NCBI GenBank assembly: GCA_000320545.1
Contig: ADNK01001129.1
Coordinates: forward strand, 62,001 to 126,000
Direction of reading: 5' to 3'
From: Bigelowiella natans CCMP2755
Lineage: Eukaryota > Protista > Cercozoa
DNA: 64,000 nt
Positions 4,166 through 37,237 of the stretch are shown here, one piece after another. The notes beneath the pieces were generated by a model. The model was not told the origin of the DNA. It made no database searches and saw only the letters and a program-made list of their open reading frames with translations. A program made the translations under genes and the position numbers. Within the stretch, counting starts at the first letter, position 1. The number at the start of each line of letters is the position of its first letter.

Positions 4166-4561
4166 TTCAACATAAAATCGCTCGGAACCGAAAATATCCC
4201 CGATAAAAAAATGAGATGATAGTATGAACTTGGATGTAGGTGCAAAATGCATGATGAAAAAGATGCAATGCATGATGTGTAATACATAGTGCATGATTTG
4301 TAAAGATAAATGTTATACATCGTAATAAATCAACTACAATTATCATCATTACCACCACCATCACCATCATCCTTATCATCATTAGTGTCAACCATCACAA
4401 GCATCACATCATCATTACTACCCATTTCCCAAAGACGAAGGATATCACAGCATCAACTATGAACAAAATTCCAGTCGGCCAAAAAAAGAAATTCCAGAAC
4501 CTAAACGTACATTTGTGTGTGTTTGTGTGTGTGTGGTGTGTGATGCATGCTGCACAATGTG

Positions 4562-4601
<40 letters not shown>

Positions 4602-4624
4602 CACAGATTGACATGTACGTGAAT

Positions 4625-4658
<34 letters not shown>

Positions 4659-4724
4659 CAACGACCTTCTCTCTTGCACAAGGTCGTCCTTCTCTTTCTG
4701 CTCTCTCTCTCTGTAGCTAGACAT
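2511..4724 (-). CDS. Hypothetical multi-pass membrane protein (spliced; internal exon phases and possible upstream exon near 5873-5910 uncertain)
   Basis: GT-AG-bounded exon candidates: MSSYREREQKEKDDLVQER|RFWNFFFWPTGILFIVDAVISFVFGKW|...GLWFIYGAVNR|MILLLIAVIGAFVTAG|AMILLIIENGGGDDCK|DQHASTLFATILAAFWGPVFAVGWCCYQCG...GGYDSV*. They are separated by microsatellite-filled introns. Confidence 0.6.
2860..4660. repeat. Cluster of intronic (TA)n, (CA)n/(TG)n and (CAT)n microsatellites; representative of dozens of similar arrays in SRP72, MFS and E3 introns
   Basis: Directly visible, e.g. (TA)n near 2865-2890, (CA)n then (TA)n at 3397-3462, and (TG)n at 4121-4164. Confidence 0.95.
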
Positions 4725-4785
4725 GATTCAACGACGTGTGTGATGATGATGTAGATGTGAGCAGTGCGTAGATAAGATATGATCA

Positions 4786-5750
4786 CAAGGGGGGTTCACT
4801 CCCCCGGGTTTTGGTCCGCATCATGCTCGGCGGTTTTACCCCGGCGTCAGCCGGGAAAATTTTTTCGATTTCACCCAAAAAAATGCAAATTTTGTTCAAA
4901 TTCCTCAATGTTTTCTTCAAAAACCATCCACAAAGTGTCCAGTGAAATTGCCCAAGATGCACATTGGCGGAACTCTTGGCATCGAGTCACTGGGATGTCT
5001 CAGATGTGCCCAACCCACTTCCCTGGCGCATGCAGATTTGATCAATGCTTTGTTCATCATTCATTGTTCATCATTCCCGCCCTTCCCATCGATGTGTGCA
5101 CCAGCGTGTGTGACTGATCACGTGCGCAGCGTCGATCATCCAGTCGTGCGCGACGTCGCGACGTGTCTAGCTTCAATTTGATGATCAAGTGACAAGTGTG
5201 CATCAGAGCGTGGGAAGCTGTGAGTGCTTGCGTGCGCGCGCGCTGGGCACGCACAAAGTGTGCCAGTCTGGCAGTGTGCGCCATCGTGCCCACACGTCTT
5301 GCTCGTGCGTCCAATCCCAAGCAGCTCTGGAGCTGCGCGTCGCGCATCACATCCAGCTTCATTGATTGCCGCATCGGCACCGTGCAGGCCGCTAGGAGCC
5401 ACACATCGAAAACTCACCTGAGTCAAAACCACAAAAAAAAAGCACCTTTTTGGCGCGGAAACGTTCAATTTTGCGAATTTTGGAGTGGAACTTCTGGAGG
5501 TGATGGAGTTGCTGTTGACACGGCCTCTGAGCATGTTTTTTTGAGCCAACACGCAAAGTGGACCCTTTCCGCGGCACCCAAAGTTTTTGCCCTCGATTTT
5601 TTTCCTTGAAAATCCACTTTTTTGCACCCCTTTCTGGACAATTCTGGACCTTCTCACACGTCCAGAAGTCTTCTGTGGTGCTTCGGAAGAAGTTTGGAGT
5701 GGATTCCGAGCATGATACGGACCAAAACCCGGGGGAGTGAACCCCCCTTG
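4786..5750. mobile_element. Non-autonomous DNA transposon (MITE-like; hAT- or P-type ends)
   Basis: 45-bp TIRs CAAGGGGGGTTCACTCCCCCGGGTTTTGGTCCG(C/T)ATCATGCTCGG at 4786-4830 and 5706-5750, with one mismatch. Perfect 8-bp TSD TATGATCA at 4778-4785 and 5751-5758. No transposase ORF recognised. Confidence 0.95.
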
Positions 5751-6513
5751 TATGATCAGTCCACGCGCTGATCCGATGATGACAGTTACAAAATTAATAA
5801 TATGTGGTATCATTCAAAGTCTTAAGAAAACAAAATGCACGGTTCAAACCCGGTAAAATCTTCCAAGTCTCACCAGCTCGAGAACCTAGGTCGCCGATGG
5901 ATGATGCACATGAAGTGTGTCAAATCTCGTTCGCCCGAAAACAATTTTCGCGACACGGTCTGTTATACGACCTCGTACTTCGTACTTCGTACTTGTTCTC
6001 TCACATGTCTGTTTCCAATTTGTCATTTTCGTTTCATTGTCGCACTTGCGAAAATTGTGGGTGAAACTTTTGCCTGATGTTTTTTGCTTGAAATGTTGAC
6101 CAATTTCAAAAAAAGACCACGGTCGACAATTGTGCCCACATCGACCATCCACAGGACTGATTAGGCCGGCCATGCCTCTCAGTCGAAGCGCTGTGCGACA
6201 TGGTACGAAAGAGCGGGGGCCTCACTTCCTGAGACTCCGCCAAGATCATGGCGTCCAATGAAATTTGACGAGGATTGATTCCCTGCGACATATTGTGAGA
6301 AATAATGTCGCAAGTCCGAAAAGAACGACGTTTTGTCCATGAATTCCCCCTAATTTGGACATCTGGGCAATTTCGGTGTCCAGAAGGAAACGTTGAAACG
6401 GATGCGAATGGATGCTTGAGAGTAGGAAGCATTAAACGGAGCACTAGAAAGCATTAAAAAGAGCAGATCTTCAACTCTAGAGAGGAACGATTGCACGTTA
6501 GCTTCATTGCATA

Positions 6514-8081
6514 ATGGCTTTCAACCAAGCTCGAAAACATGTCGTTGCAAACTCGCCCTGTGGCACAATGCTGCCCGGCACAGTCGACATTGACGCTCAT
6601 CGTCGAGAAAAGGGGAACTTTTTCTTTCAACCAGCACGCATTCATGGCTCTAGGCCCATGGGAACGTCGCAACCCTTGCCAGAGATATCTCCTCCGCAAT
6701 ATGACGGCTACCAACGCCAGCTGATGAAGGGAAGGAAAAAACGTCTAACAACACCACCAAACCGTAGAATTACCACTCTACATCAAGGACCGAGGAGAAG
6801 GGACAAAGATGAATGGGCGTTGGTCTTCGATAAAAAGGTAATGAGTGAAGCTTATGCCGAGTAGACCTCTGGTGTTTTGTGATATAAACTGACGATTTGT
6901 TTCAAATTACAAAAGGATAGAGCAGCGTCAGAGCATGCAATTGAGGTGGCAAGGAGAAAAGCTGCTAAACGGCGGAGCCTTGTCGATGAGCTCGACCGGC
7001 AAATGGCTGAGCGGGAAGAAAGGGCGAGGAGGATTAAGGAACGAAAAAGGATTGAATTGGTTCTCAGCCACAACACATCGTATGGATTATTCCGCATCTC
7101 GTTCAACATCATTCTTCTTCATTAGGAAAACATTCGAGAGGGAGAGCGATTGCTACGACTCGAAGACGAGCGCCAACGGTAGTGTATATCATCGTCGATA
7201 TACATCACTGTATCTCATGCTTCAAGTTTCACGTCTCATTTATCAGGCAGAAGAAACACTCGAGACAGGAACGACTACGGACCGAATTAATGAATAATGA
7301 AAGGGAGAAGAACAGCTATGTTCAGCAACGGTTAACAACCCAGCGCTCTGAGGTTCTTTCTCAAACTCAATACTTCGCAAATTGCTTCTATAATCTATTT
7401 TTCTTTCACATTAGGAGCTGGAGTTGCTTAAAATGGAGCATGAAAAGGCTGAAAGAGATATACGTCGGGAACATGAGAGGAAATTACGCGAAAAGGAGCG
7501 ATTCAAGAAGTTAAAAGAGAGTAATCAGGAAATGAAACGAATCAAGGAACAAGAGAAACAGCGGGAGATGGACTACGAAGTTCAATTAATGAAAGAGTGA
7601 GCCACATGTATTTACTTCATAAAATCATAATGAAATGACACTTATTCCTTCGTAACTAGATACGTCCGACGTGAGGAAGCCAAGGAAAAGAGACGAGCTG
7701 AAGAGTTCCAAAGCCGGCAAAGGCTTGTAGGTAAGTGGAAGCCATGAAACACAGAAAAATAATAATGCTCTCGGCGACAAGAGAGGGGAAGTAAACTAGA
7801 TCGATATAGTATCAAATTCTGAGAAAAAGGTGTTATTATGGATATGAATACGGTATTTGTTTAAATTTGGCAGATGGTCGTGAAGAAGAAGGACTCAAAT
7901 TAGTAATGGAGAAGAGGAGAATTTGAGAAAACTACATTTAATGCTAGATAACTTCGTAAACGCGCATAGCGATCATGCTGCGCAGTCACACACAAATATG
8001 CACACAGGTGGATTGATACTTGAGCAATGCATCCCTCTTATATACTCTTTTTCATTTGTTTTATGAATGAAAACAATTGAA

Positions 8082-35089: not shown

Positions 35090-35959
35090 AAAGTCTAGTG
35101 CTGTGCCTGAATTTTCGTGTCAATCTAGCAATGCATTGGCGGGCAGAAATAAACGATCAATTTGCATTTCAACATCACGGCATAGCTTTGCATGTTTGTG
35201 GCACACTGCTAGACTATGTGATGATTGTCGATGATGGCAATGGGCAGCACAAACAAGTGATTTGAATCAGGTAGGTGCAGTGATCGATTGAAGTGAAGAG
35301 ACTTCAAGTCATTGCATGCTAGCATGCGTGCGCGAACAGCAGACATGCAATCGTCGCAAGTGTCAAGATCGCATCACTCATTGCTAGATTGGCGTGGTGG
35401 TGAACGATCAATGTCAGCGCATTCCAGCATTACAACACTTCAATGTCTTCTACGTCAGCTAGATGTCTAGACGTGGAGGTGCAGAAACGAGGGTTCACAC
35501 ACCCAGCCAGTCAGACACGATGGCACGCTCGTGCTGATGATCCGCCAAAGTGACTGCCAGGCTAGCAGATTAGTGCAGTTCCAGAGTTGCTGCACGGTCT
35601 GGACATGCTGGCTACATGGTATGCACAACCTTTACGACGAAGCCAAACATCCAGAAATCACTGGATCAAGCATCGTGTGCTTTGTTGATGTTGACATCGT
35701 CTGGACAGACATCCAACTCATCATCATTCCCATGCTGGCATATTGCATCGTGTTGCCGTTGCGTTCAGATTCCTCACGTTGTTGTCGGATTTGACAAGCT
35801 TGTTTTAGCATTCACCACATTGCAATCTGAACGCGCCCTGGAGTCGCGTTTCTCACTCACTTGTGACGTGCATGGGGCGGCTGCAATCGCACGGGCTCGG
35901 TGCGGCACATTTCTGTGCCTCACTTCTCGAATGAGCGGTTTTGGCGAGTGGTTCTAGCC
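35090..35959. other. TpA-depleted convergent intergenic region between the kinesin and MFS 3' ends
   Basis: Few TA dinucleotides, many of them in CTAG or TAG/CTA context; rich in CA/TG, CATG and CTGG/CCAG. Confidence 0.75.
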
Positions 35960-36504
35960 TCAAAAATTATCAACCAAGTTGTGCCCAAGGAGGCTGATTT
36001 CCTCCTCATCTTTGCTGTCTGACACATCAGAGACATCACTCTCTTTCTCGTCAGCGTTCTGCCCAAAAAATGACAATGTTAGGAGTTGATGGTTCTCAAC
36101 AAAGGAAAGCTGAATTGACGATCAATGACCACCTTCACGGGAACAAATGCTGGCTCCCTTTTTTTCTTGTCCCAGTAAGAAATTAAAATGCAGAATACGC
36201 CGCCAATGGCCAACAAGACTGTCATCATTCAGATTGACATCAGCAAAAAAATCACAGAGATGCAGACGAAAATGACAAGGAAACAAGATTGCACGCACCT
36301 GCGATGAGAATGAAGATGATCGTCCATCCTGCCGTGTCACTGATGAATCCGACAGCCAGCTACCAGGAAAGTGAACCAAATGGCATGCAATTTCAATGGG
36401 CAATGCAGATGACACATCATGTGATGACCATCATCGTCGTCATCATCATCATCATCACCGCACTAACAAGGATAGAATGATAACTTATTATCCCTTTCGT
36501 AATG

Positions 36505-36564
<60 letters not shown>

Positions 36565-37237
36565 CATATGTATGCATTTATATATATTTTAATATATTTC
36601 CTGTTGTCTCAATTTATTTCACTAATAGAACACCTGTCCAAGCGCGGCGATTCCACTGCCCGTGCCGTCCACAATACCTTTCGTAACCATTCATCACAAT
36701 CAGGAGTGCCAATAAATGGCATGTTCATTCTCTCACGATTTGTCTCGCAGGTTTCAAATTTCGCTACTAGCTAAGCTATGTGCTCCATGCATGATGATTT
36801 TAGCACCGGATATGGTTGCCGTGACAGCGAGTTGCGATCTTGTTCCGATATCGGCTGATTGAAAGAGGAGCGGGATGATCAGCCCAAAATCATCACCACT
36901 ATGATCCATCCACACTTTGTTTTGGTTGTAGATGAAGATAAGGTGTGCTGCGTGTACAGTGTTTGTCGTTGATCAAATCGAGCGCCTGCACGTACCTGCT
37001 ATAGCAGTTGGCATAAGCATGGCCGGGCCCCCCATCATCGTCCTAGATCGTTCGTAAAATGAAGGGGGGTGGGTGAATGCATGGATGGACGAGAGTTGGC
37101 TGATGGTCGCTGTGGCAGCTCAGCACGTCAATGGCGTACCGATATACTCAAAATATGTATTAATACGACAGAATATGCACGCGCGCACACACACACACAC
37201 ACTCAAAATATGTATGTACATTATATATATAATAATT

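Follow-up and report, generated by a model that had tools for sequence, protein, structure and literature searches.

The locus considered here raises the question of how a mobile element can come to lose nearly all of one dinucleotide, and what this loss means for the element and for the DNA around it. In the 64,000-nucleotide stretch of the Bigelowiella natans genome that was analysed (hereafter the window), positions 4786-5750, a segment of 965 bp with the composition A212 C264 G237 T252, contain four TA dinucleotides (at 4837, 5168, 5393 and 5716) against 55.4 expected (obs/exp 0.07), and the original prediction, which had been drawn from the letters of the sequence and had put these numbers at four and roughly 50-60, was exact on this point. 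Shuffling the element 20,000 times gave a mean of 55.4 TA (SD 5.6) and a minimum of 36; the Poisson probability of the deficit is 4e-19, or 5e-14 when the TA obs/exp of 0.77 for the 64-kb window is taken as the baseline, and the element is the lowest-TA 965-bp stretch that the window contains. Both CA (obs/exp 1.48) and TG (1.36) are enriched. The CpG level of the element (obs/exp 0.93) is the background level of the window (0.91), with no depletion, and on this ground deamination of 5-methylcytosine was rejected as the cause. The earlier suggestion that GCGC runs in the element represent converted TATA runs has likewise to be abandoned, since TA is changed to TG or CA and never to CG.

An 8-bp duplication lies directly outside each end of the segment and identifies 4786 and 5750 as the true ends of the element, with the termini CAAGGGGGG at its start and CCCCCCTTG at its end (Table 1). 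As had been predicted, the sole mismatch between the two inverted ends falls at a TA site (C4819, that is, CA against TA at 5716-5717), and two of the four surviving TA dinucleotides, those at 5168 and 5393, sit inside CTAG. The TA that is private to this copy is most simply explained as a new G-to-A change; the same letters are present in a contig of single-copy depth from a 2025 sequencing run.

Table 1. The element and its borders, in window coordinates.
Feature	Position	Strand	Remarks
Left target-site duplication TATGATCA	4778-4785		Identical to 5751-5758; TA kept
Non-autonomous inverted-end DNA transposon, hAT-like, TA-erased, 965 bp	4786-5750	+	4 TA vs 55 expected
Left 45-bp terminal inverted repeat, begins CAAGG	4786-4830	+	44/45 match to reverse complement of 5706-5750
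Inverted-end site 34-35, left	4819-4820		Here CA, i.e. converted
TA private to window copy	4837-4838		TG in 13 other full copies; alignment column 52-53
CTAG with surviving family-wide TA, consensus site 383	5167-5170		CTAG 17/21, CTGG 3, CCAG 1
Second CTAG with surviving family-wide TA, consensus site 598	5392-5395		CTAG 21/23, CCAG 1, CTGG 1
Right 45-bp terminal inverted repeat	5706-5750	-	Compared with left end
Inverted-end site 34-35, right	5716-5717		TA retained here
Right target-site duplication TATGATCA	5751-5758		TA kept; duplications of 7-9 bp and of differing sequence at other copies
Right flank, nearly all single-copy	5759-6560		TA roughly halved (obs/exp 0.31-0.55 over first 800 bp); belongs to the shoulder of about 400 bp around the copies of the family

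A search of the genome (91.4 Mb in 3,736 contigs) places the element in a family with at least 14 full-length copies, all in unrelated flanks, to which fragments and longer variants have to be added, the family termini numbering 44 in all. Pairwise identity among the 14 full copies is 95.9-99.7%. Ten of them are bordered by perfect 8-bp target duplications, one by a 7-bp and one by a perfect 9-bp duplication, and the remaining two by 9-bp duplications that each contain one TA-to-TG/CA mismatch. Over the element, contig depth rises to 20-28 times the value of the flanks. The 8-bp duplication, the lack of coding capacity and the occurrence of tens of near-identical copies liken the family to non-autonomous (MITE-like) hAT elements, and the terminus CAAGG fits YARNG, the end motif of hAT elements; classic MITEs, however, are shorter than 965 bp, and the inverted ends of this element measure 45 bp. 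Neither Pfam nor Rfam gave a match for the element, and the open frames of the longer variants (L033 and L034) had no Pfam hit. As regards an autonomous partner, a 33-base end pattern allowing up to three mismatches matched this family only across the whole genome, and the three hAT dimerisation-domain loci of the genome have ends, AGGGCTGGGCACAAAT, that are unlike those of the element. The window insertion was found in all four read runs examined; an empty-site joint at this position was found in none of the four, which thus give no evidence of present-day mobility.

Hypermutation of TpA to TpG or CpA has been reported in Bigelowiella natans (Mettrop et al., bioRxiv 2026, 10.64898/2026.01.13.699255), and the process that had been put forward as possibly novel is therefore already the subject of a 2026 preprint. 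The mutation-accumulation lines of that study revealed two integrated viral regions with a mutation rate about 1,000-fold above that of the remaining genome, and in the integrated giant-virus region 206 of 211 new mutations fell at TpA, all of them to TpG or CpA; across the genome, DDE transposase and reverse-transcriptase domains are over-represented among coding sequences poor in TpA, and adenine deamination by an ADAT2-like enzyme was proposed by the authors (10.64898/2026.01.13.699255). The element resembles this system in the dinucleotide, the direction and the products of the change, and in the combination of low TpA with raised CpA+TpG, while the transposon domains among the TpA-poor coding sequences provide a further likeness. 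Judged by the footprint cut-offs of the preprint (Rho TpA <= 0.43; Rho CpA+TpG >= 1.52, a 5% cut-off for 1-kb windows), the TA obs/exp of the element (0.07) and of the family consensus (0.04) lie under the first; the CA+TG obs/exp of the element (1.42) is raised, yet remains below the second. The genome searched contains a single giant-virus major capsid locus (L053, G000:C3187:124672-125196) with a 438-aa open frame, in which TA makes up 3.4% of dinucleotides with an obs/exp of 0.50, compared with 3.3% and 0.45 for the integrated virus of the preprint; the locus matches that hypermutable virus, and the genome is very probably the same. The preprint deals with two integrated viral regions and with a survey of coding sequences and 1-kb windows, without erased elements that still transpose or depletion that spreads to flanks, and its main text makes no mention of CTAG, MITEs, hAT or flanking bases (10.64898/2026.01.13.699255).

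We consider it highly likely that the element is a copy of a non-coding transposon family and that its lack of TA represents the final outcome of this hypermutation. Most of about 50 former TA sites would have been converted in the ancestor of the family, and the TA-free element would have stayed mobilisable and gone on transposing, since the ends are all that a non-autonomous element requires. The process would then have converted the one TA of each inverted end in individual copies and, slowly, the two CTAG sites, TA in CTAG being converted about ten times more slowly, and it would also have eroded TA in the target duplications and in about 400 bp of flanking DNA. The enzymatic step is plausibly adenine deamination, giving A-to-G changes on either strand.

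The inherited nature of the erasure is apparent from the comparison of copies. Each full copy retains two to five TA dinucleotides and the majority consensus two, both in CTAG, and since the consensus itself is so poor in TA and the copies are nearly identical, the bulk of the loss is older than the amplification and was inherited rather than imposed copy by copy. Among the TG/CA dinucleotides of the consensus, 141 of 170 are invariant across all 14 copies, fragments that are 87-92% alike carry the same TG/CA states, and shared ordinary substitutions mark nested subfamilies on this common TA-free background. The original prediction had named near-identical copies and a consensus itself devoid of TA as the signs of inherited composition that would speak against it, and for the bulk of the sites in this family this is what is found; the excess of transitions at TA that it had expected is nevertheless present, copy by copy, at the residual TA sites of the inverted end and of CTAG. 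That the ancestor of the family did contain TA is suggested, on the evidence of the sequences, by the dinucleotide balance, in which a TA deficit of 53.5 is set against a CA+TG excess of 51.4 (about 41 and 33, respectively, with the dinucleotide biases of the window as the baseline), and by eight sites (34, 151, 499, 572, 629, 757, 828 and 921) at which the copies alternate between TG and CA, an alternation that requires TA as an intermediate state or else two transitions at neighbouring positions at the same time.

It could be argued instead that the family was never TA-normal, having arisen from a TA-poor donor, by assembly from erased DNA or under selection, and that hypermutation added only the last changes. 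The two TA of the consensus would agree with such an origin, as would the TA-free state of all three hAT transposase loci and the fact that the search recovered no TA-bearing relative of the family, even the copies that are 87-92% alike being erased. However, the near equality of CA+TG excess and TA deficit and the alternating sites argue against it, the same CTAG-sparing signature occurs in 56-64 kb of unrelated erased DNA, and the mutation has been seen in real time (10.64898/2026.01.13.699255); moreover, birth from already erased DNA would still be hypermutation, one step removed. We regard an origin of this kind, including its selective variant (for example the avoidance of TA-targeting insertions), as improbable.

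At the residual sites, conversion has continued in individual copies. At inverted-end site 34-35 the left ends read TG in 11 cases, CA in six and TA in three, and the right ends, read inward, TG in 18 and TA in two. On a maximum-likelihood tree of the 14 copies, which was built without the inverted-end site, the left site changed state at least six times, and sister copies differ at it in the pairings TA/CA, TA/TG and CA/TG. Polarisation is possible at the two CTAG sites, since 38 of their 44 site-copies still read CTAG; the other six changed without exception (6/6) to CTGG or CCAG, and this is 7.2 times the A/T-to-G/C transition rate at other A/T positions (Fisher P = 2e-4), although the polarised changes from TA to TG or CA within the family rest on few sites. 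The only two mismatched target duplications, ACTGCGAGG/ACTACGAGG and CACGAGGCC/TACGAGGCC, differ as TA/TG and TA/CA, and in both cases the converted duplication copy lies on the TA-depleted side. Conversely, nine private TA dinucleotides that arose from ordinary C-to-T or G-to-A changes persist in the copies, which implies slow or episodic action in this family. The predicted change of A to G in 5'-TA on either strand is thus borne out both by the mutation-accumulation lines of the preprint and by the residual TA sites of this family.

Since the process evidently acts on copies after insertion, at the inverted-end and CTAG sites, and since the flanks are depleted as well, one might suppose that every copy was erased independently after its insertion, in the manner of RIP, with the TG or CA outcome fixed by the local sequence. 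The same 45-bp end, however, gives three states on the left and two on the right, and CTAG gives both CTGG and CCAG; the choice is accordingly not set by the sequence, and free choice at some 50 sites could not have brought 14 copies into the agreement observed, nor would it produce nested subfamilies, defined by ordinary substitutions, on one and the same TA-free background. Independent erasure is in our view very improbable, and the loss in the ancestor remains the preferred reading.

The DNA around the copies is also depleted. In a profile of 25 flanking sides, from which three fully erased sides were left out, TA obs/exp rises from 0.46-0.56 within 0-400 bp to 0.74-0.75 between 400 and 800 bp and to 0.81-0.87 past 800 bp, and CA+TG obs/exp falls from 1.37-1.46 near the copies to 1.20 farther out. 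Among the proximal 200-bp sides, 11 of 28 have a TA obs/exp below 0.25, compared with 1.6% of the other 200-bp windows in the 64 kb. We infer that the depletion follows insertion, and the mismatched target duplications imply at least some action after insertion; the shoulder is, however, often one-sided and no trend with copy age was detected, so that some flanks may have been half-erased before the element arrived. The long (TG)n and (CA)n microsatellites directly to the left of the element (window 4510-4665) inflate the CA+TG content of the left flank and are not evidence of conversion. On the right, a segment of about 135 bp (window 6012-6148) recurs in the genome as six further, diverged copies (72-86%) and may be a small old repeat. 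Single-copy depleted patches do exist, and flanks are half-depleted, but it is most unlikely that the depletion belongs to the locus, through its chromatin or a gene-end context, instead of to the element itself, given that the drop to a TA obs/exp of 0.07 begins and ends at the first and last base of the element with TA-bearing duplications on either side, that the same pattern is found at 14 unrelated loci and that a TA-rich retrotransposon lies with sharp edges inside one erased copy.

This retrotransposon also bears on the question of what attracts the process, which the original prediction had supposed to be targeted to repeats. It is a 5.7-kb LTR element (L031:2200-7914; G000:C1535:14199-19913) that splits a copy of the family, contains an open frame of 1,657 aa for reverse transcriptase and RNase H, and shows a TA obs/exp near 1.1. 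Among 507 first-look candidates, at least 23 copies of this element are 100% identical over 5.5 kb, TA-rich and unmutated. On the other hand, window positions 35300-36600 are single-copy, with only a 30-50 bp motif recurring elsewhere, and have a TA obs/exp of 0.2-0.3 and a CA+TG obs/exp of 1.4-1.7; the hypermutable viral region is single-copy too (10.64898/2026.01.13.699255). Over the time scales observed, sequence duplication is thus not enough to provoke the process, nor is it required, and the notion of repeat targeting does not hold. With fungal RIP the process has in common that mobile DNA is hypermutated at the DNA level, by transitions at a specific dinucleotide, and that neighbouring sequence is hit to some extent; but RIP, which changes CpA to TpA, needs duplicated sequence and acts before meiosis, whereas the element has lost TpA and gained CpA and TpG, the opposition of direction having been recognised correctly at the outset. 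Another copy of the retrotransposon (L039:1840-4501) sits at a distance of 130 bp from an old family fragment, and this LTR element may prefer erased or silenced DNA.

The sequence rule of the process can be read from the TA that it spares. In a sample of erased DNA comprising 29 segments of fetched loci (56-64 kb), CTAG holds 96 of 239 surviving TAs, and the density kept relative to non-erased DNA is 65% for CTAG, 10-12% for CTAH/DTAG and 0.6-6% for other contexts. Within the family, the conversion of six of 44 CTAG site-copies may be set against that of 17 of 20 left ends at the inverted-end GTAT, from which a relative rate of about 0.07 follows for CTAG, and the two classes of site together provide an internal clock. 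New mutations point in the same direction: in the 206 TpA events that Table S2 of the preprint lists for scaffold 10, the edited A is followed by A in 67 cases, by C in 52, by G in 20 and by T in 67, such that TAG accounts for 9.7% of new events but for 21-22% of TA sites (P = 3e-6 to 1e-5). The expectation that conversion would be slower before G, with the palindromic CTAG protected, agrees with these proportions. Between the strand-equivalent classes of the same table, A-to-G at TAG (3/91) is rarer than T-to-C at CTA (17/115; P = 0.008), a difference at odds with a simple strand rule. In erased DNA the half-site products TTGG and GTGG exceed TCAG and GCAG, respectively, which would run contrary to the simple rule, supported by Table S2, that a 3' G inhibits, although the comparison is confounded by composition. 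Table S2 also lists four T-to-C events on scaffold 10 that lie outside TpA (ATG three times, ATT once).

As regards the enzyme, clustered transitions in foreign nucleic acid are a feature shared with APOBEC3, acting on retroviral cDNA, with ADAR, acting on double-stranded RNA, and with ADAT2/TadA-type deaminases. In the natural substrates of TadA and ADAT2 the edited A is preceded by U (tRNA position 33-34), which fits the T-A context. ADAR2, in contrast, favours a 3' G, while TAG is disfavoured here. The proposed search for TadA/ADAR-like proteins did recover one ADAR/ADAT1-type locus and six CDA-fold loci, but this is an ordinary set without expansion and gives no lead that would add to the ADAT2-like candidate of the preprint. 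The CTAG rule, taken with the list of new mutations in Table S2, is a concrete constraint for identifying the enzyme.

Reports of DNA-level A-to-G hypermutation systems in eukaryotes are very few. The TpA mutator of this alga is among them, and its support has so far come from one preprint and two integrated viruses (10.64898/2026.01.13.699255), to which the present family adds a non-coding DNA transposon as a target. Relative to the preprint, four points may be new: that transposition persisted once TA had been erased, that the TA of the inverted end was converted repeatedly, that the flanks show a shoulder of about 400 bp, and that CTAG is spared. The family also indicates a limit of such a defence, in that an element for which the ends suffice is not immobilised when its TA is erased, and the half-erased flanks near insertions are a possible cost to the host. 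More speculatively, and with considerable reservation, the family could be viewed as a hypermutation-proof transposon, which, having no editable TpA left except one in each inverted end, spreads under a TpA-directed defence while its insertions attract the editor and erode about 400 bp of host DNA. The inverted-end TA may be kept because the transposase needs it. Were this so, there would be a collateral, transposon-seeded mutagenesis of host sequence, and the sparing of CTAG would be the sequence rule of the editor.

Two minor observations concern other erased DNA of the genome. The three hAT transposase loci (L047, G000:C2149:9838-13038; L048, C2351:207186-210413; L049, C2036:87357-90518) are themselves TA-erased, with an obs/exp of about 0.05, and carry subterminal TTTGCAAA repeats within the ends given above; they contain open frames of 536 and 603 aa, but since TA-free DNA lacks the stops TAA and TAG, long frames in it are no evidence of function. 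Finally, 50-60 bp of the element at window 5023-5084 (element positions 238-299) recur with 83-96% identity in erased loci outside the family (L043-L046), and this segment is probably a piece common to another element family.
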